Shown here piece by piece: positions 41,401 through 56,546 of a stretch of DNA of 64,000 nucleotides; the stretch's first letter is position 1, and each line of letters begins with the position of its first letter. The DNA is taken from the NCBI GenBank assembly GCA_001179505.1, contig CDMY01000327.1, forward strand, positions 55,525 through 119,524, in the 5' to 3' direction. A model generated the notes under the pieces. It ran no database searches. It was not told the origin of the DNA and worked only from the letters and a program-made list of their open reading frames with translations. The DNA comes from Vitrella brassicaformis CCMP3155 (lineage: Eukaryota; Protista; Chromerida). The position numbers and the translations under genes were made by a program.

Positions 41401-41752
41401 GAGTATTCTTCTGGCGTTTTCTTCTTCATCGCCCTTTTGGCGCACCGCTGTCAGCTCGTCCCATGTGTCTTTCTTGACCTTCTCGAGCAGCGTGAAGCTG
41501 TCGTACACCTGCTGCTTCCCGACGGACAGGGTCTGGGAGGGCCGTTTGCTCCCGCCTGCAGCTGCGGCACTCGGGGACTCGCCCTCGACTTCCGTCGCTG
41601 GGGGAGCACACAAATGACAAAGAATACCAAGAGAAGCACAAGGTCTTCTTCTGCAGTGCAGGAGGGGGCTCACCTTCCTTCTCTTTCTTGAGTCGCGCCT
41701 CAACCCGCTTTCGACGGATAGCAATGCGCTCTTCGGCCGTTGTGCCCAGCAT
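38455..41752 (-). CDS. DRC1: Dynein regulatory complex subunit 1 (CCDC164/NYD-SP28 family)
   Basis: EERIAIRRKR, QQNACQAILDGKDRRIREFLTELKNYDEDYVK, MVATYQLNKEKLDYNLQVL, LTEEYKRLTKQFEDLQEKFHHF..VWEMNE, and C-terminal QNEELKQLMDQYLQSRVNEELQVPPT. Confidence 0.9.
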
Positions 41753-41963
41753 CGTGACAACCGGGAACGCGACAAGAAAGAAGCAGCTTGGAAGCAGCCC
41801 TCTTCGCCAACTTGTTTTGTCCCTGCCCCCCGCTTGTTGACAAGCTCGCAAAAAAGAAGGGGGTTCTCCAGGATGGCTGACACATTCACATAACTAGAGT
41901 GGAGGAGGGCAGCACTTCTGGTGAGAAAAGAGGGCCTCTCCATGAATGATGGAAAGCGATCGT

Positions 41964-41977
41964 CTAGGGTTTTGCGG
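41964..41977 (-). promoter_or_regulatory. Telo-box-like CCGCAAAACCCTAG in the DRC1/molybdoenzyme divergent spacer
   Basis: ctagggttttgcgg on the plus strand. Confidence 0.4.
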
Positions 41978-42174
41978 TTTATTTGCAGGCGAATTGGAGG
42001 GGCCAAAGAAGCCTCTGCCTGCCCCGTCGCTGGACACCTTTGATTTCACACTTGTCATCACCAACATTTGCAGATCTACGCAGAACGCGTCCACAGCGAG
42101 GTAAAGTACGTACTGCCTTGTTGCTGGCGTCCTCTCATCTCCCTGCCTGTCGTTGTGCACGCCCCTCCCTCCAG

Positions 42175-43827
42175 ATGTCTGACACAGATTCGACGGCGAC
42201 GCCCACCCCAATGGGAAGTGCAGGCGTTCCGACGCAAGGCAAGTCGCTCTACCATACCATCCGGATGCCCAAGGGCGACACCGTCTTCGACGGCACAGCA
42301 GACACACCCGATGACAAATGGTGGGCGAGGCGAGTGGGGGAGGACGCAGATCAATTGCCTATCTTACTCGCTGTGTCTGTGTGTGTCTGAATGCAGGATC
42401 AAGAGGCGGCCTGAGATGGTGCGTTTGACTGGGAAGCACCCCTTCAACAGCGAGCCGCCTCTGACCCTCATCAAGGAGTCCTTCTACACACCACAGGAGC
42501 TCCTCTACGTCCGAACACACGGTGAGGACGAGGCGACATGCACATGACACGCACAAGACTTTGCAAATGTCTGAACGTCTGTCTGTCTGTCCGCAATGTC
42601 TTCCAGGCGACACTCCGCAGCTCGACGAGAAGACCCACAGCGTCAAGGTCGACGGTCTGGTGTCCAAGCCTCTCACGCTCTCTGTCGAGCAGATCAAGCA
42701 GTTCTCCAAGACCGACATCTCCATGGTCATGGTCTGCGCCGGCAACAGGCGGAAGGAGCAAAACATGATCAAACAGACAGTGGGGTTCAACTGGGGGCCC
42801 ACGGGCTGCGGCAACGTCATCTGGACCGGTGAGCAGACCAAAGAAATGGATTAATTCCACCAAATGGGCAGTGGACGTGTTTGCTGTGTGTGGTTGGCCT
42901 GTTAGGTTGCCTGTTGCGGGATGTGTTGCTGCATTGTGGTGTGGACACGGAGGAGGCACGGCACGTCTGCTTCGTCGGTGCAGACAAGCTCGCGTAAGCT
43001 TGCCGAAAGAAGCGACAACAAAGCCCGTCAGGCCGGCCACTGACGTGTCTGTGTGTTTGCAGTCATGATCACTACGGTACGTCCATTCCGATGTCGAAGG
43101 TGATGGATCCCGAGGGCGGCGTGCTGCTGGCGTGGGAGTGCAACGGAGAGCCCCTCCTGCCCGACCACGGATACCCAATACGTGTTGTCATGCCGGGTAC
43201 GTCACGGGCATGAGACACTCTCACACACATCCACCTCACCTGCATATGGCGTATGTATGTTGGTCTCTGTGTGTGTGCAGGGTACATTGGTGGCCGTGCG
43301 GTCAAGTGGCTGACCAACATCAGTGTGTCCAAGGAGCAGAGCACCAACTACTACCACTACCGCGACAACAAGGTGTACCCCAGCCACGTCGACCAGCAGA
43401 ACGTCGGCCCCGAGGGATGGTGGGAAGACAACACATGGTGCATCAACGTGAGCCGTCACACTACCCGCACCAGCGAAAACCGAGAAGCGCCTTCATTTCA
43501 TCTCATATTTGATGTGTGGTCCTTTTGCTTGCATCACATGCAATGCAGGATCTGAATGTGAACGGAGCGATCACCAACATCCTGCACCAGCAGACCCACG
43601 ACATTTCCAAGCCCCTGAAGCTCTCGGGCTACGCCTACTCGGGCGGCGGGCACCGCATCATCCGGCCCGAGGTGTCGATCGATGGCGGCAAGACGTGGAA
43701 AATGGCCACCATTACCGTCGAACCCAAAACACGTGAGGGAGGGACGGAGGGAGGGAGGGAGGAAGAGAGAGGGAGGGAGAAAAGCCAGAGGGGCGTCGTT
43801 GTCGCCTTTGTGGATGTGTTGTTCTTG

Positions 43828-43865
<38 letters not shown>

Positions 43866-44418
43866 AGTATGGTCGCACTTACGAGTGGTCCTTCTGGGAG
43901 ACGGAGGTGCAGCTGACGCCGTCTACTGAACAGATCTGCTTCAGAGCATGGGTAAGGCGCGAACAGAAGACATGCCCGTGCACACTACACCCGTCCCTCC
44001 TGTCCACACCGCATGCGTCCGTCTTGCTGCCCTCCCTTGTGCATTGCAGGACGATGCGATGAATGTCATGCCGGACCGGCCGAATTGGACTCTGATGGGC
44101 ATGCTCAACAACTCCTGGTACCGCATCCAGGTCACCAAGAAGGCAGCCAACACCGTCGAGCTCGGCCTGCCCCACTGGGCGCACAAGGACGCACCCAACC
44201 ACCCTCTCAACGTACTCAAGGCACCACACATCACCGACACACTTGGCGGCCCCACCAGCACCACAACCACCACAACCACACCAGCAGCATCGGCCAGCAA
44301 GGGCGGCGCGGCACCAGCTGTCGCTCCATCGGTCGCCTTGATGGGCGGCATGGCGGTTACATGCAGCCTGGCCGCCGGGCTGCTGGGGTTTGCGCTCGCG
44401 CAGAGGAAGACAGTGTAG
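42175..44418 (+). CDS. Nitrate-reductase-type molybdopterin (Moco + dimerisation) protein with no haem/FAD domains and a C-terminal hydrophobic tail
   Basis: [111 protein letters not shown], then a Thr-rich linker and [28 protein letters not shown]. Confidence 0.9.
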
Positions 44419-45108
44419 GCAGGGCGGGGAGGGTGGCCGACCCGGGGTGCGGTGCGTGCGTGAGTTTGTTGTGCATGTGCTGTGCATGCGTCGAGTCGAG
44501 GGGTGGTGCTGTGTTGTATAGCGGTAGCCAGGTAACTGACTGACGGGGACGGTCCGGAATGGTTGGGCCAGCCAGTTGTTTCTCGATTGGTGGCGGCGTA
44601 CTCTGCAGGCAGATCGGATCACTTTTTTGACCGTGAATGCCTGTACGTGTGAGTGCCGTGCCCTTCTCGCGTAGCTAGGTGCAGTGCATCCACGAACCTT
44701 GTGTGTGTGTCTGGCAGCAAGAGGGCTGCCGGTTTTGGGGGATTGCTGCGCTGCGTTGATTGCCTGGCGCCATTTTGCGTCCATGCATTTCCTAAGCCTC
44801 ATCAGAAGCCCTACTAAAACATGTTCGTTCGTGTGCTTTGATTGCATGTCTGTCTGTCTGTCTGGCTGTCGATGCGATGAGTACGTGTGCGCTGTGCGTG
44901 GGGATGGCGCAGCAAACCTTTGATGGCTGACCGATCGAATGGAATGGTTCGTTCTTTTGCGGAGATGCATTGCATTGGAAAAGGCATGGAGGCAGGTCCT
45001 ATCCTATGTATACATCGGATGTAAGCAGGACATGCAGACAGGTCCATCCATCCATCCATCCATTCACCACCGACCAGTGTCGCAGTCGATCAACAGCCGC
45101 TGTGCCAT

Positions 45109-48100
45109 CTAGCTGTCCTCCAGCCTCCTTCTCTTGGCCTCCCTCTCCACACCCTCACCTGACACATTGAGGCAGACATCACAGATAGCCATGACGCACA
45201 CAAGGAATGCGTGTATGTCACGCTGATCTGGCTCATCCCCTCCCCCCATCTCACCCTCTTCCTCCTCCTCTTCCTCCTCCTCCTGCGGCTGCTGCTGGCC
45301 ATCGCCATCATCGGCATCGCCCTCCCCATCCAGATCTGCACACGCAACATATGTGCAAACGTACAAGTGAGCCCAGACACAAACACCGCCCCCCACTGAC
45401 TCCTCTGACTCCTCACCCTCATCGCTATCGTCGTCATCGTCACTATCCTCGTCCGCACCCTCTTCTGCACAAACCACACACCGATTCATCCAGCCGACCT
45501 ACCGAGATGGAGGCGGCTGGCTGCACACTCACCCTCCTCCTGTCGCCACTATCGCCATTGCCCTCTCCATCGACGTCGGCATCCATGTCTGCACAAGCAT
45601 ACTCAAGACACACAAACATGAAAGTGGGCCCAACCACACACACACATGTATTCCACTCACCCTCATCGCTGTCGCCGTCATCCGCACTGTCATCGTCATC
45701 CTCTGCACACACACATACATACATATGAGCAAGACACCTAGCAAGGCAGGCTGGGCACCACACACACCACTTACCCTCACTACTATCGCCATCGACGTCA
45801 TCCGCACCCTCCTCTGCACAACGCCACACACACCGATTCATCCGACCGACATACCGAGATGATCCACACTGATCCATTCATTGCTCATCCGTGTGCCGCC
45901 CCTCCTTGTGCTTGCCTGCACTCTGCCCGCCACCCTCACCACCACCACCACCATCAGCTGGGGGGAGGGCTACATCTAGCTGGCTGCCGAACATCCTCAC
46001 GGCGTCGGCGGCTCCCATCACCTCCCGCACCACCTTCACTGTCTGGGGGAATCTGGCGGCTCCCTCCTTGCCAGCCATCGGCGGCTCCGTCGTGCGGAGG
46101 TAGACGGTTGCATAGCCTCCATCGACGTAGAGATGTGCCGCGAATGTGTGGTCCGGCTGGTCGCCATGCAGCACTATCATGCGGCCGCGGCTTGTGGTGC
46201 TGATGGTGTGGCAGCCCCAGACGGGCGGCGGCTGAGTGGCGAGCTGCCGCTGAAGGGAAAAGGATATGACAATGAGTGAGTGGGACAGCTGGTGAGGCAA
46301 TCGTGGGTGTGTTCCCTGACCAGTCGGTTGTAGCTTGAGGGATCTTCATGCTGCGGGAGCGTCTGCTCGCGACCTGGCCGCATGGTGGTCGCGCATCCTG
46401 CATCCTGGTCAGACACATCATGGCACAGCGGTGCAGCCAATGTGTTAATGTGATCGTGTGTGTCATTCTCCTCATGTTTCTCACTCATACAACACGGTGT
46501 TGCGGACTGAAAAAAACTCAATACCTACACACAGACATGCACACACACAGCCTGATGGTCCGTTGCCCATTGCCCTTTCCCTACCTCCCCCCTCACCATA
46601 GTACTCACACACGGGGTTCTTCGGGTCATATCCATTGCGGAAGGGGTGGTCGGCCCACATCGTGTGCAGTGTGCGGATGGTCAGCCGGTGCACACCCAGC
46701 CGCTCCTCGCCGTCGACGCGCTCGAGCGTCACACCGAGATGGCGCTGGATGAGTGAGAGCTGCCGCAGCGCCTCACACCGCCCGTCGAACACCGCCCGGC
46801 TGCTCACCCCCTCCACATCAGCACTGCCCACCTCTATCGGCAACCGCTCCACCCGCCCCTGGTGCTTGGCCACCCTCACTATGGGCTCCCACCCCTCCCA
46901 CTCGCCGCTGTTGTCGATGAAGTACACCAGCCGCAGCAGATGGCCGACGGATGGCAGATCGTAGCTGATGATGTCCTGGATGTCTTTGGCAGCGAGCTGG
47001 GCGTCGATCAGCGATCTGAGCAGGTCCGCAGAGACCCGCTCTCGGCCAAGGCGGCATGTGGTGCGGATGCGGGCGAGGCTGACGGCAAGGTCGCCGCCGA
47101 GGAGGGGGAAGAGGACCCCCTTCTCGACCTCCTCGAGCAGCTTAAACAGGCGAGGCTGATGGCCAGACAGAACAACAAGGCAACCAGCGGAGAGGAGGGA
47201 GGCGGTGTGGGCTGCTTGCTTCATTCGTGTGTCTGTGGCTGCCTGAGTACCATGCTGTTGTCGGTATCCTCATCTACAGGTTGCTCCACTGGTACGTTCT
47301 CAACGAACCTGAAGCCCTTGTGGACCTGCACACACATCACATCAGACAGAACACACACAGGATCATTCAAGCAGTGGAGGTGGAGGCAGCTCTGCCTACT
47401 CCCAGACGTAAGTACCTGTTGGCCGTGCGGCGATGCCTTGGCCTGGTGCGGCACCACCACAGTGAACTCCTCTGTCCCCTCTATTTCCCTCATGGACACT
47501 CTCGTCGCCCCGCCGGCTTCCTCAGTGCGATAGACGTCGGCCTTGAGCCACACATAGCTCTTATTGGCACCCCTTCTGGTGCTCGACGTCAGCAGCACAC
47601 GCGTGCCGGTCTTGTAGCGCTCGTGGGAAGACGGCAGCATCTGATGGATGGATGGATGGATGGAACCAACAAACCAATCGACCAAATGAACGAGTGAGTG
47701 AATGGGGTACCTGTGGCTGCGGCAGGTCGGCGGCGCGGCGTGTGAGACCGCCACCGCTGTCTATGTCCATCAAATCACCGCCTGGAGTGTTGGACGGCAT
47801 GGCATGTTGTCGTGTGATGTCACTCACTCACTGACTGACCTTTCTCCTTGGCCTTGGCCTTCGCCATTGGCTTGGGTGCAGCCATGAACTTGGCCTTGGC
47901 CTTGGCCTTGGCAGCATCCATCAACATCGGAGCTGACACCATTCCACGCCCCAGACAACACACACAAAACAGGGAGAAGTGAGTCGAACGACCGGTGCAC
48001 TTGTATGCCGCGTGCTCTGTCTAGATGTGTGTGTGTACCATTGTGTTGCGAAAGGTAGCCCATCGCCGAACCTGCAGCAGGTGGAGCAGGTGCAGCTGCC

Positions 48101-49818
48101 ATCCTGGTCAGACACATCATGGCAGAGCGGTGCAGCCAATTTGTTTTATGTGATCGTGTGTGTCATTCTCCTCATCTTTCTCACCGACACGACACAGCGT
48201 CGCGAACTGAAACATAGTCAACACCTGCACACAGCAATACACACACACAACCCAATGGTCCCTCTCCTATAGCTCTGCCCCCTCCCCCTCACCATCATAC
48301 GCACACACGGGGTTGGCCGGGTCGCGGAAGGGAAGGTCGTCCGGCAGCGTGTGCAGTGGGCGAATGGTCAGCCGCCGCCCATCCAGCTGCTCCTCACCGT
48401 TGTTGTCGCGCCCGAGCGTCACACCGAGGTGCCGCTGGATGAGTGAGAGCTGGCGCAGCGCCTCACACCGGCCGTCGAACACCGCCCGGCTGCCCACCGC
48501 CTCCACATCAGCACTGGTCAGCTCTATCGGCGACCGCTCCACCCGCCCCTGGTGTTTGGCCACCCTCACTATGGGCTCCCACCCCGCCCACTCGCCGCTG
48601 TTGTCGATGATGTACACCAGATCCAGCAGCAGGTCGAGGGATGTGAGGCCGGGGAGAGTGTGATGACGTTCTTCAGGCCGTTGTCTTCCATCAGGCGGTC
48701 GATCTCCTTCTTGACGCACTGCAGCACAGCGTCGCGAGTGGAGTCGGTGATCTGCGAGAGGAGTGCCTGTCTGGTGGCCCGCGAGTGGGCCGCTTCGCTG
48801 ATCTCCACGGACCAGAGGGGCGGAGGGCTGATGGTGGAGCGGTCCTGATCCGATGACGACGTCGCCTGATGAATGAAACGAACCGACAAGCGACCAAGAG
48901 AGCCATAGTGATGCATATAGTGATGCATATGGCTCTGTGTGTGCGTCCTTCACTCCACCAGGTCTGTGTGTGTCTGGAACTCCTGCTGCTGCTGCTGCTG
49001 CTGCGGCTGTTGGTCGGCCTGCTGTCCGGTGTGCTGTTCGGCCTCCTCTGCGGGAGCGGGAGGTGTCGTGAACTCCTGACGGGGTTGGCTGCTGTCCTCT
49101 GGCTGGACGGCCGGTGACTCGTCCTCCAACACAGTGACACCAGCTGCACACAGGACAAACACACAGAGAGGGGGAGAGGACGGGAAACGTGTTGCACAGG
49201 GGTGATATGGTGTTGTGTGATGGTGTAGTGGTGTGGAGGGGTGTGCGGCGGTGGTGGCGAGGCTTCTCTGACGTGATGCTGACCCCAACGTGGTGGGGTG
49301 CGACCCCTCTGACCACGTGTGTGTGTGTGTGTGTGACTGGTCTACACCATCCCCCTTCCCCCCCACTCACCGGGCTGCTCGTGTGGTTTGCTCTCGGGGT
49401 CCTCCTGCTGCTGGTCTTGGTTGCCATCGTTGCCCTCTCCCTGCTGGTCTCCGTCGACGACAACCACCTCCTGGTGCTCGGTGGTGGTGATGTGGCCGTT
49501 CTCGGGCGCTGGATGCTGTTGCTGCGCCTCAGGGGAGTCGCCACCGTCTTGACCGACAGGGGAGGGGTCTGCACACACGCGCACCACACGCGCACACACA
49601 CACAACACCATGTTGGACGCGAGACACGTGTGGCGTGTGGTGCGGTGTGTGGAGGTGTGTTTTGGCTGCGTATGGGTGTGCGGTGGTGTGTGGTGTCGGC
49701 GCTAGAGGGTGTGTGATGAGATGGCGGGCTGGCGTGGCCGGGGGGAGGTGCCTTGGTCTGTGCGCGTGCCACCCGTGCCCGTCTCCGTACCTTGTTCGCC
49801 GGTTTCGTGGTCTGACAT
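45109..49818 (-). CDS. Lineage-specific multi-exon protein with two copies of an uncharacterised domain, Q/E-rich N-terminus and acidic micro-exon tail; at least one frame break (possible pseudogene)
   Basis: Two paralogous blocks LVY(I/F)IDNSGEW.GWEPIVRVAKHQGRVER.PIE..SADVE..SRAVFDGRCEALRQLSLIQRHLGVTL, linked by phase-compatible small exons; frame switch at about 48650. Confidence 0.6.
45190..45865 (-). repeat. Tandemly duplicated acidic micro-exon/intron units
   Basis: Intron ends atctcggta.gtcgg..ggatgaatcggtgtgtg..tgtgcag followed by (A/G)AGGGTGCGGA occur at about 45860 and 45510; D/E/G-rich micro-exons in between. Confidence 0.75.
46390..48625. repeat. Duplicated exon+intron block (about 46390-46935 vs 48100-48625)
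   Basis: Shared coding sequence (ctggatgagtgagagctg.cgcagcgcctcacaccg..) and shared intron sequence (catcctggtcagacacatcatggca.agcggtgcagccaat..gtgatcgtgtgtgtcattctcctcat). Confidence 0.9.
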
Positions 49819-55254: not shown

Positions 55255-56546
55255 GGGGAAGGGGCCACATTTCATTCATGGGGCTGTGTTCCTTCCCTTC
55301 CTTGACATGATGTGTAGTGCATGATTTGGTCGCGTGTGAATGTGCAGTGCATGCTTAGTCAGCTAGTGTGTATACGTACGTATGGTGTGAAAATGTGTGT
55401 ATCTAAGTACGTTGCTTACGTGTACTGGTGTGTGTTGCGGTGCGGTGCATGTGTGCAGACAGCCAGGCGGGCTGTTCACCATCGCGCACAGCGCAAGTGA
55501 TGTGACGGCAACCGGTACGCCACGCACGCCTCCTTGTGCAGGTGTAGGTAGTTTTAGCTAGCTAGCTACGGATAATGAGAGAGAATTGGTGCACTCACTG
55601 CACGAACTGGCTCACTAGGTGCTTGATGTGATGGATGTGTGTCTCTTGTCTGTCTATTGCCCCCCCGTCTGTCTGTCTGTCTGTCTGTCCTGCCTGCTCT
55701 TTTTAGTTCTCGAGCTTTTTCAAGACCCTGCCGCCTTCTGTCTGTTTGCGCCCCGACGGCCTCCATGTCATGTGTCGATATGCGACCGAAACGACAGAGA
55801 GGGACGGCCTAATTGGCCACCCATGGATGTCGTGACTGATTTTCGTCCCTCTCTTGTATCTGTCTGTCCGTCTTTCTGTCGGGATTCTTGGCGGTCGGTT
55901 GGTCGCTCTGTTTTTTCTTCTTCTTCTTCTTCTTCTTCTTCTCTTCTTCTTCTTGAGCGGCGTTTGCATCAGGTCCTCTTCCCTTTAAGCATCTTGTGTC
56001 TGCGTGTCTGGCTGTGGCTCTCGCCGAGAATATGCCTTGCGCCATATACTGACCTGCGCAAACTCGGCGCTGTGGGCTGCTACTGCCATGTTATGTTGTG
56101 TCGTCGGGAGGGAGAGAAGTGGGTTGGTCGATTCGACTGTAGTAAGTTCATCAAGGGTGTCGCATGGTAGTGAGTGGATCGGACAATAATTGTCGACTCG
56201 ACCTCTGAGAAGGCTGGCTCTGCGCCCTTGACATGTAGCCCTCAGTCATAAAGCCTTCCTCATGTGTTTGCTACGTGTCGAAAAACTCTGTCTCAGGCAA
56301 GTGCTTGAGCAAACACCACTGCACGCCACGCCACGCCACGCCACGCCACATGCCGGCAAACCTCTGTTGTCCGCATCATCATCACCAACACACAGTCCTA
56401 ACTGACTACATGGTGCAAACCACAACCCGTCTATCAATCTATCTGTCTATCTGCCTGTGGCAGCATTGCAATGCAGGCGGAACCCGCATACGAGCCAGGC
56501 AGCCCCCCCACTCCACTCCACCACACTGCAGCGCACGTTGCCTGCT

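Follow-up and report, generated by a model that had tools for sequence, protein, structure and literature searches.

The window analysed here is 64,000 nucleotides long (64 kb; positions 55,525 to 119,524 of contig CDMY01000327.1, forward strand, assembly GCA_001179505.1) and comes from the chromerid Vitrella brassicaformis CCMP3155. It carries the gene Vbra_11175 (protein CEM02486.1, UniProt A0A0G4EV47), which encodes the molybdenum (Mo) half of a eukaryotic nitrate reductase (NR) followed by a putative C-terminal membrane anchor. The textbook eukaryotic NR is a single polypeptide in which electrons travel from NAD(P)H to flavin adenine dinucleotide (FAD), then to haem b5, and finally to Mo. 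The coding sequence of Vbra_11175 (window 42175-44418, plus strand) is divided among nine coding exons, separated by eight introns of 69-133 nt that all have GT..AG ends, and yields a product of 506 residues (Table 1). This model is identical to the open reading frame (ORF) of an MMETSP transcript (P0264), an independent source, and the deposited protein CEM02486.1 (P0001) is identical to it from Met13 on, the deposited model having its start there and not at the mRNA-backed ATG at 42175. Residue numbers refer to the 506-residue product unless P0001 numbering, which begins at Met13, is stated.

Vbra_11175 is an intact, expressed gene. Contigs from four public sequencing runs (X1, X2, X6 and X7) were placed on window positions 41700-46200; those of X1, X2 and X7 are spliced and hence RNA-derived, and those of X6 cover the introns and are hence DNA. 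Seven of the eight coding introns were seen as GT..AG joints in the RNA contigs, and intron 7 falls inside a skipped repeat, where X1 record 1 has 88 contig letters between 43729 and 44049, a number that fits exon 8. The 5' untranslated region (UTR) has a stop in frame and lacks any upstream ATG, which identifies the ATG at 42175 as the start codon, and since the RNA contigs begin at 41989, the real transcript start may lie further upstream. Exon 9 runs unspliced from 44049 through the stop codon to 45033 in X1 record 1 and to 45135 in X2 record 3 and X7 record 14, with zero single-letter differences between the exon 9/3' UTR contigs of these runs and the window; the last exon being free of joints this far, the 3' UTR is about 700 nt long. 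A preliminary description of the locus, made from its letters alone, had ended the gene at this stop and had named a splice near 44130, or a silent locus, as grounds for doubting its account. No GT..AG joint out of exon 9, near 44130 or elsewhere, was present in any run, the transcript ends where that description had placed its end, and spliced RNA from three runs shows that the locus is expressed.

Two long joints, 42393->44847 and 42590->44850, were discarded. Their ends are non-canonical and both lie in (TGTC)n runs, and one side of each is only 21-22 letters long, for which reasons we treat them as assembly-graph artefacts and not as splicing. The (TGTC)n microsatellites concerned are located in intron 2 (42577-42592) and in the 3' UTR (44847-44870), and give rise to false long-range joints and many loose contig ends in all four runs.

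Table 1. Coordinates of the Vbra_11175 gene, the features of its product, its neighbours and a metagenomic NR-type gene (window positions unless a contig is named)
Feature	Position	Strand	Remarks
5' UTR exon	41989..42100	+	in-frame stop, no upstream ATG; X2 contig covers 41989-42098 and joins 42173
5' UTR intron, GT..AG	42101..42174	+	joint 42098->42173 (cut +2) in X1, X2, X7
Coding exon 1	42175..42320	+	N-terminal extension with chromerid-specific motif; ATG is the first triplet
Coding exon 2	42397..42521	+	VRTH(G), substrate-binding Arg
Motif box in exon 2, residues 59-69	42425-42457	+	
VRTHG	residues 87-91, exon 2		
Coding exon 3	42607..42828	+	Oxidored_molyb start (Pfam E 4.5e-17); Mo-ligand Cys134 (42735-42737), GFNWG
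Mo-ligand Cys motif, residues 134-143	42735-42764	+	
GFNWG	residues 150-154, exon 3		
Coding exon 4	42906..42993	+	Oxidored_molyb
Coding exon 5	43063..43196	+	Oxidored_molyb
Coding exon 6	43281..43447	+	Oxidored_molyb end; YHYRDNK with NR-type Asn268
YHYRDNK, residues 263-269	43352-43372	+	
Coding exon 7	43549..43732	+	Mo-co_dimer, GYAYSGGG (Pfam E 1.9e-17)
Coding exon 8	43866..43951	+	Mo-co_dimer
Coding exon 9	44050..44418	+	Mo-co_dimer end, VELGLPHW NR-type extra strand, linker, hydrophobic tail, stop
Mo-co_dimer-end motif, residues 399-409	44092-44124	+	
Predicted disordered Thr/Ala/Pro-rich linker, ~residues 425-478	44170..44331	+	pLDDT, composition
Thr run	residues 453-462, exon 9		
Predicted tail-anchor transmembrane segment, residues 479-501 (23 aa)	44332..44400	+	Kyte-Doolittle
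Basic end QRKTV (residues 502-506) and TAG stop (44416-44418)	44401..44418	+	
3' UTR	44419..45135	+	contiguous with exon 9 in RNA contigs
Neighbouring gene, 924-aa product, no Pfam match	45140-46200	-	introns 45464-45533, 45588-45661, 45702-45775, CT..AC
Tandem-paralogue-like ORFs, no Pfam match	46481-47224, 48267-49772	-	shared near-identical module, ~90 residues
P0033, 526-aa NR-type Mo-cofactor and dimerisation protein	L002:8001-9581	+	neighbours L002:1-13207; same layout in L003, L004

The product consists of the Mo half only. In the exon pieces Pfam assigned exons 3-6 to Oxidored_molyb and exons 7-9 to Mo-co_dimer and found nothing else, the precomputed domain annotation likewise lists PF00174 and PF03404, and the top solved-structure match of the exon 3 piece is Pichia NR. 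Neither a Cyt-b5 domain nor an HPGG motif was found in the product by Pfam and motif scan, nor was FAD_binding_6 or NAD_binding_1 by Pfam and tblastn. Used as tblastn queries, the halves of six canonical NRs that carry haem, FAD and NAD domains gave chance matches only in the 64 kb window (best E 0.68) and, similarly, in the 22 kb assembly locus (L001) and three Chromera transcript contigs; as a control, the N-terminal halves of canonical NRs recovered Vbra_11175 at E ~1e-65. The haem domain and the flavin reductase module that define the canonical EUKNR holoenzyme (EC 1.7.1.1-3) are thus both missing from Vbra_11175. Pfam, the HPGG scan, tblastn and the transcript end all agree with the preliminary description, which had proposed a stand-alone protein with NR-type Mo-cofactor (Moco) and dimerisation domains, and no haem or FAD module before the next, opposite-strand gene.

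The active site is of the NR type, with the Mo-binding Cys, RRKEQN, GFNWG, the Asn in DNK and Met-Gly-Met, and all the motifs quoted in the preliminary description are present in their places. When Vbra_11175 was aligned with canonical NRs and four bacterial sulfite oxidases (SOs), the Asn of YHYRDNK fell at the position of the SO Tyr, and the Met-Gly-Met in LMGMLNN at that of Lys/Ala-Gly-Tyr in the bacterial SOs, which confirms both residues as NR-type; the active-site Tyr and Arg of SO (Y322 and R450 in chicken) are absent, with Asn and Met in their stead. According to the account of Qiu et al. (2012) given in PMC6783311, these are the positions altered in the chicken SO specificity mutants 3r18 and 3r19. 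Vbra_11175 retains every one of the 43 columns found to be invariant in an alignment of 50 NR-family proteins, and its post-dimer strand VELGLPHW lines up with the FEHP..GGW hinge in NRs, a region before which SOs end. Among solved structures, the Mo fragment of Pichia angusta NR (2bih) scored best, with 307 bits; wild-type chicken SO reached 255 and plant SO 242, and the top-scoring SO structures (3r18, 3r19) were those of chicken mutants designed to move the enzyme towards reducing nitrate. The same Pichia fragment is the best structural match (E 1.4e-48) of the AlphaFold model, in which the predicted local distance difference test score (pLDDT) is mostly at least 90 over residues 81-410 (P0001 numbering) and the predicted template modelling score (pTM) is 0.76. 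In a search space of 5.8 billion proteins, the matches listed after three Chromera homologues were NR-type, mostly full-length canonical NRs with 41-49% identity; all 294 proteins fetched were NR-type, and none of at least 340 residues shows the SO-type Tyr motif.

The phylogeny points in the same direction. Trees were built from 384 columns of 59 NR-type proteins, with four bacterial SOs from plasmids as the outgroup, and the NR clade including the chromerids separated from these four bacterial SOs with support of 100/100. The grouping with NRs and not SOs, on which the preliminary description had staked its account, is therefore upheld. Because both the active-site residues and the tree position are of the NR type, the name 'Sulfite oxidase' attached to the UniRef entry A0A0G4EV47 is probably wrong, and we reject SO identity for Vbra_11175. 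That name, along with the capacity of contigs to miss rare isoforms, is what might be said for an incomplete gene model, a pseudogene or a true SO. We consider all of these highly improbable, given that three runs agree on a spliced mRNA that is full-length and has a UTR at each end, that nothing resembling a haem or FAD module occurs in the 64 kb, and that every invariant residue is kept in a protein of the NR clade whose SO Tyr and Arg are replaced by NR residues.

One departure from the NR pattern, pointed out in the preliminary description as RTH for RNH, is indeed present: VRNHG, with its nearly invariant Asn, reads VRTHG in Vbra_11175, the neighbouring substrate-binding Arg being retained. 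The position is occupied by Thr in two of the Chromera proteins, by Asn in the third, and by Ser in bacterial SOs. Given the retained Arg and the residues that these homologues and SOs have at this position, the change is probably harmless.

Downstream of the dimerisation domain the protein takes a course of its own. The linker (residues 425-478) is rich in Thr, Ala and Pro, and AlphaFold treats the chain as disordered after about residue 424 (pLDDT <50 from residue 429 in P0001 numbering). No 19-residue window in the protein is more hydrophobic than one within residues 479-501 (Kyte-Doolittle 1.79), and the first 60 residues peak at -0.2, a hydrophilic N-terminus that argues against a signal peptide. 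By hydropathy prediction, then, the protein has the sequence features of a tail-anchored protein, namely a lone hydrophobic segment no more than about 30 residues from the C-terminus and no signal peptide; a GPI-anchor reading of the tail was rejected on the latter ground. The Thr-rich linker, the hydrophobic segment of roughly 23 residues and the QRKTV end described previously are thus borne out. A hydrophobic end is also found in each of the three homologues from Chromera velia, P0002 (572 aa), P0006 (541 aa) and P0151 (570 aa), which are 46-51% identical to the Vitrella protein and contain the same two Pfam domains only (Oxidored_molyb and Mo-co_dimer). In each of them the top hydrophobic window is also at the extreme C-terminus (1.91 in P0002, 2.14 in P0006 and 1.37 in P0151). 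Between 3 and 17 residues, basic ones among them, follow the hydrophobic segment in the four chromerid proteins, whose C-terminal regions are the most hydrophobic among the scanned haem-less NR-type proteins that also have no FAD/NAD domain. The Vitrella and Chromera linkers are too diverged for alignment, and the maintenance of the tail's position while the surrounding sequence drifts argues for a function. P0151 is represented on 11 transcript contigs; the three examined all have a complete ORF that ends like that of Vitrella, and two of them continue for about 4 kb downstream with no haem or FAD homology.

Together, these sequence features make it probable that Vbra_11175 ends in a membrane anchor. 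It could be argued instead that the hydrophobic C-terminus is a disordered or protein-binding tail on a soluble enzyme, as Gly, Ala, Ser and Thr abound in the segment, its hydrophobicity is only moderate in Vitrella and lower still in P0151, and AlphaFold gives it no helix. We regard a soluble enzyme as rather unlikely, because the segment holds its position in four proteins despite their unalignable linkers, because basic residues come after each segment and each lies within 20 residues of the end, and because three of the four proteins exceed the classical Kyte-Doolittle threshold of 1.6. The silence of AlphaFold on the tail is best taken as neutral, since the alignment has no depth there.

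The chromerid proteins also share an N-terminal motif (window 42238-42320, about residues 22-49), located upstream of a TPDD.W box, that was not seen in the canonical NRs inspected. It reads [FY]HT[VI]R, then M or TM, then one residue, then K[GE]D.

Other NR-type proteins with a reduced set of domains came to light in metagenomes and transcriptomes. The marine metagenome contigs L002-L004 (119-161 kb, with single uninterrupted gene calls) contain a prasinophyte-like nitrate gene cluster in the order nitrite reductase (NiR) fused to a FAD/NAD module, NAR1, a canonical NR of 1002 aa, P0033, a kinase and a Cyt-b5-like gene of 250 aa. P0033 has no haem or FAD domain and bears an N-terminal hydrophobic segment, with the canonical NR present in the same cluster, and the Cyt-b5-like gene two genes away has a C-terminal hydrophobic tail. 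Two short forms, P0201 (Pyramimonas, MMETSP) and P0230, are 64-68% identical to P0033 and begin with MG. This suggests that the P0033 group may be a second, independent family of membrane-attached NR-type proteins with neither haem nor FAD, and that the theme is wider than the chromerids. A further cluster, P0039 (585 aa, 23 members), comprises NR-type Moco and dimerisation proteins without haem or FAD from JGI/IMG metagenome contigs and an MMETSP transcript; P0039 has a C-terminal extension of 160 residues with no hydrophobic segment.

The four chromerid proteins (Vitrella and three Chromera) form a clade with support of 98/94, and its depth in the tree raises the question of origin. In the careful tree, rooted on the bacterial SOs, the chromerids are sister to the 55 other NR-type proteins (88/90, short of the 95/80 star threshold), and in an ingroup-only tree they attach on the deep, unresolved backbone. 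Both placements, as well as a post-dimer extension shorter than the canonical FEHPT.PG..GGWM hinge, would suit the idea that the chromerid proteins are survivors of a stand-alone NR-type Mo enzyme predating the haem/FAD fusion, and not degenerate NRs. We nonetheless find such an ancestry quite improbable. The approximately unbiased test does not reject (p 0.76) an alternative tree in which the chromerids are nested above fungal paralogue groups and whose likelihood exceeds that of the quick tree by 13.5 log units, and the outgroup branch is long (0.88), so that the sister position may be a product of long-branch attraction. P0033 and P0039 both fall away from the chromerids in the tree; the partner of P0039 is the full-length NR of Rapaza viridis (98/83), from which it follows that losses of haem and FAD do happen. 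Symbiodinium, a related dinoflagellate, has three listed EUKNR genes (PMC6400420), and if these are read, by assumption, as canonical fused NRs, a relic confined to chromerids would need many losses. Secondary loss of the haem/FAD half is consequently the more parsimonious explanation.

As for physiological context, a survey of the nitrate pathway lists three NRT2 transporters, a single EUKNR (Vbra_11175), two NAD(P)H-NiRs and no ferredoxin-dependent NiR (Fd-NiR) for Vitrella (Ocana-Pallares et al., 2019, S1 Table A; PMC6400420), and rates the pathway 'Complete'. The alignments of that study carry the exact Vbra_11175 sequence, and its text is silent on the absence of three of the five NR domains; a separate SO of the Cyt-b5 type, Vbra_14808, appears in its supplement (PMC6400420). 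With one EUKNR listed, Vbra_11175 is on present knowledge the only NR-family gene of Vitrella, and as this only listed NR has no haem or flavin module, its electrons probably come from separate partner proteins. By the same token, nitrate assimilation is likelier to be its role than N-oxide or nitric oxide (NO) chemistry; of the functions offered in the preliminary description, nitrate reduction is therefore favoured, to judge from gene content, and the others appear less likely.

The way in which such an enzyme most likely works can be sketched as follows. We envisage a homodimer, formed through Mo-co_dimer and held by its tails on the cytosolic face of a membrane, that would act as an assimilatory NR, converting nitrate imported by NRT2 to nitrite at the Mo centre for delivery to the NAD(P)H-NiRs. 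The Mo centre would be supplied with electrons in trans by a separate carrier, for which the most plausible candidate is, by analogy with mARC, a distinct cytochrome b5, bound to the membrane and reduced in turn by NADH-cytochrome b5 reductase. The haem/FAD half would have disappeared within the chromerid lineage and been replaced by a disordered linker some 55 residues long, a hydrophobic helix and a basic end. Such an arrangement has precedents, as mARC, a Mo enzyme with a membrane anchor, needs separate partners (PMC10637980), and, in the prasinophyte-like cluster, an N-anchored NR-type protein with neither haem nor FAD is found two genes from a tail-anchored b5-like gene. We assign a rough probability of 0.55 to this reading taken as a whole, that is, to a tail-anchored, nitrate-assimilating NR Mo half of the NR clade that receives electrons in trans and arose by haem/FAD loss in chromerids. 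As for the interpretation put forward in the preliminary description, its architecture, NR-type residues and transcript end hold good, and its membrane insertion, its mitochondrial outer membrane and its b5/b5 reductase partners remain conjectural.

Alternatively, the same architecture could serve another reaction, such as the reduction of nitrite to NO or of another N- or S-oxide, and lie outside the main nitrate route. Every eukaryotic Mo enzyme is able, in certain conditions, to convert nitrite to NO, and which substrate is preferred can depend on the partner, crARC with NR being an example (PMC10637980). Moreover, the Thr of VRTHG might signal altered chemistry, and there are domain-reduced NR paralogues of uncertain function (Chattonella NR3, a fungal euknr paralogue). 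We think this alternative unlikely, in that the known nitrate-binding and specificity residues are all retained and no further NR-family gene is reported in a species that has nitrate transporters and nitrite reductases.

Several observations do weigh against the assimilatory, tail-anchored enzyme that we favour. Membrane insertion, location, partners and activity are things that we only infer; AlphaFold offers no confident tail helix (pLDDT ~30), and one Chromera paralogue has a weak tail, with the Kyte-Doolittle value of 1.37 given above. The replacement of Asn by Thr in VRNHG is unusual among NRs in the 50-protein alignment. Growth of Vitrella cultures on nitrate as nitrogen source is something we take for granted, the medium not having been found in the literature searched. 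No b5 or b5-reductase gene adjoins Vbra_11175. Lastly, the status of only NR comes from screening predicted proteins; re-annotation by TBLASTN was reserved for species with incomplete pathways (PMC6400420).

The surroundings of the gene gave no partner cluster, a possibility that we rejected on finding an NYD-SP28 protein and proteins with no assigned function next to it, with no b5, b5 reductase, NRT2 or NiR among them. From about 45140 onwards the joints in the contigs have CT..AC ends, which places a minus-strand gene downstream of Vbra_11175, and because its 3' end abuts the 3' UTR of Vbra_11175, the two genes converge. Its product has long acidic Asp/Glu runs. The module shared by the two minus-strand ORFs beyond it (Table 1) follows the pattern ..IDNSGEW.GWEPIVRVAKHQGRVER..SADVE..SRAVFDGRCEALRQLSLIQRHLGVTL...

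The gene model itself was already public and had been used in a published NR phylogeny (PMC6400420). What appears to be new, from the sequence, is that the only reported NR of chromerids is a split, probably membrane-anchored enzyme. We found no description, in the literature searched, of a tail-anchored or haem/FAD-less chromerid NR, nor of any tail-anchored NR-type protein or any NR-type protein without both haem and flavin modules. In a photosynthetic, free-living relative of the apicomplexans, then, the sole reported NR-family gene encodes a Mo half with an apparent membrane anchor. If this half is a working NR, nitrate assimilation in chromerids would be carried out by a split, membrane-bound, multi-protein system, and the fused NR architecture would be dispensable. 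There would also be, for a eukaryotic NR bound to membranes, a candidate defined at the gene level; to our knowledge, biochemical work on plants and algae has reported such membrane-bound activity with no gene assigned to it. Were the chromerid proteins ancestral after all, they would descend from an enzyme that preceded the fusion of haem and FAD modules into the canonical NR. In practical terms, the database name of the Vbra_11175 protein is here corrected from 'Sulfite oxidase' to NR type, and the case is a caution for pathway surveys, in which 'NR present' may be scored from the Mo domain alone.

Among known systems, the canonical EUKNR (2bih) is the closest in kind; canonical NRs show 42-49% identity to the Vitrella protein and share with it the Moco and dimerisation fold, the Mo-ligand Cys, RRKEQN, GFNWG, DN(K/R) and Met-Gly-Met, as well as the post-dimer extra strand (..HP..W). 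The Vitrella protein differs in having no Cyt-b5, FAD_binding_6 or NAD_binding_1, in ending with a linker and hydrophobic tail, in its shortened hinge motif and in the change from VRNHG to VRTHG. Within the chromerids, Chromera has three paralogues with unrelated linkers in place of the one gene of Vitrella, and its P0002, unlike the Vitrella protein, keeps VRNHG and carries CVGNRR.

The five-domain plan is also broken elsewhere. Chattonella subsalsa NR3 lacks the haem domain and coexists with a haem-containing NR2 (PMC6128913), and the ichthyosporean CS-pNR chimera retains haem with its flavin module swapped (PMC6400420); NR3, however, loses haem only, and neither protein is described as membrane-anchored, in contrast to the predicted tail of Vitrella. 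The foraminiferal 'pNR' candidates, for their part, are SO-like (PMC6783311, PMC8153729). Plant haem-free SO (1ogp) and the bacterial SOs match the two-domain, haem-less architecture of the Vitrella protein, but they have Tyr and Arg/Lys where it has Asn and Met, stop right after the dimer domain, and form the outgroup in the tree. In its likely mode of operation the Vitrella protein is perhaps most reminiscent of mARC, which is likewise membrane-anchored, has no redox modules of its own and relies on separate partners. The analogy is one of mechanism only, since mARC is a monomeric enzyme of the MOSC fold with an N-terminal anchor and other substrates, whereas the Vitrella protein has the SUOX fold.

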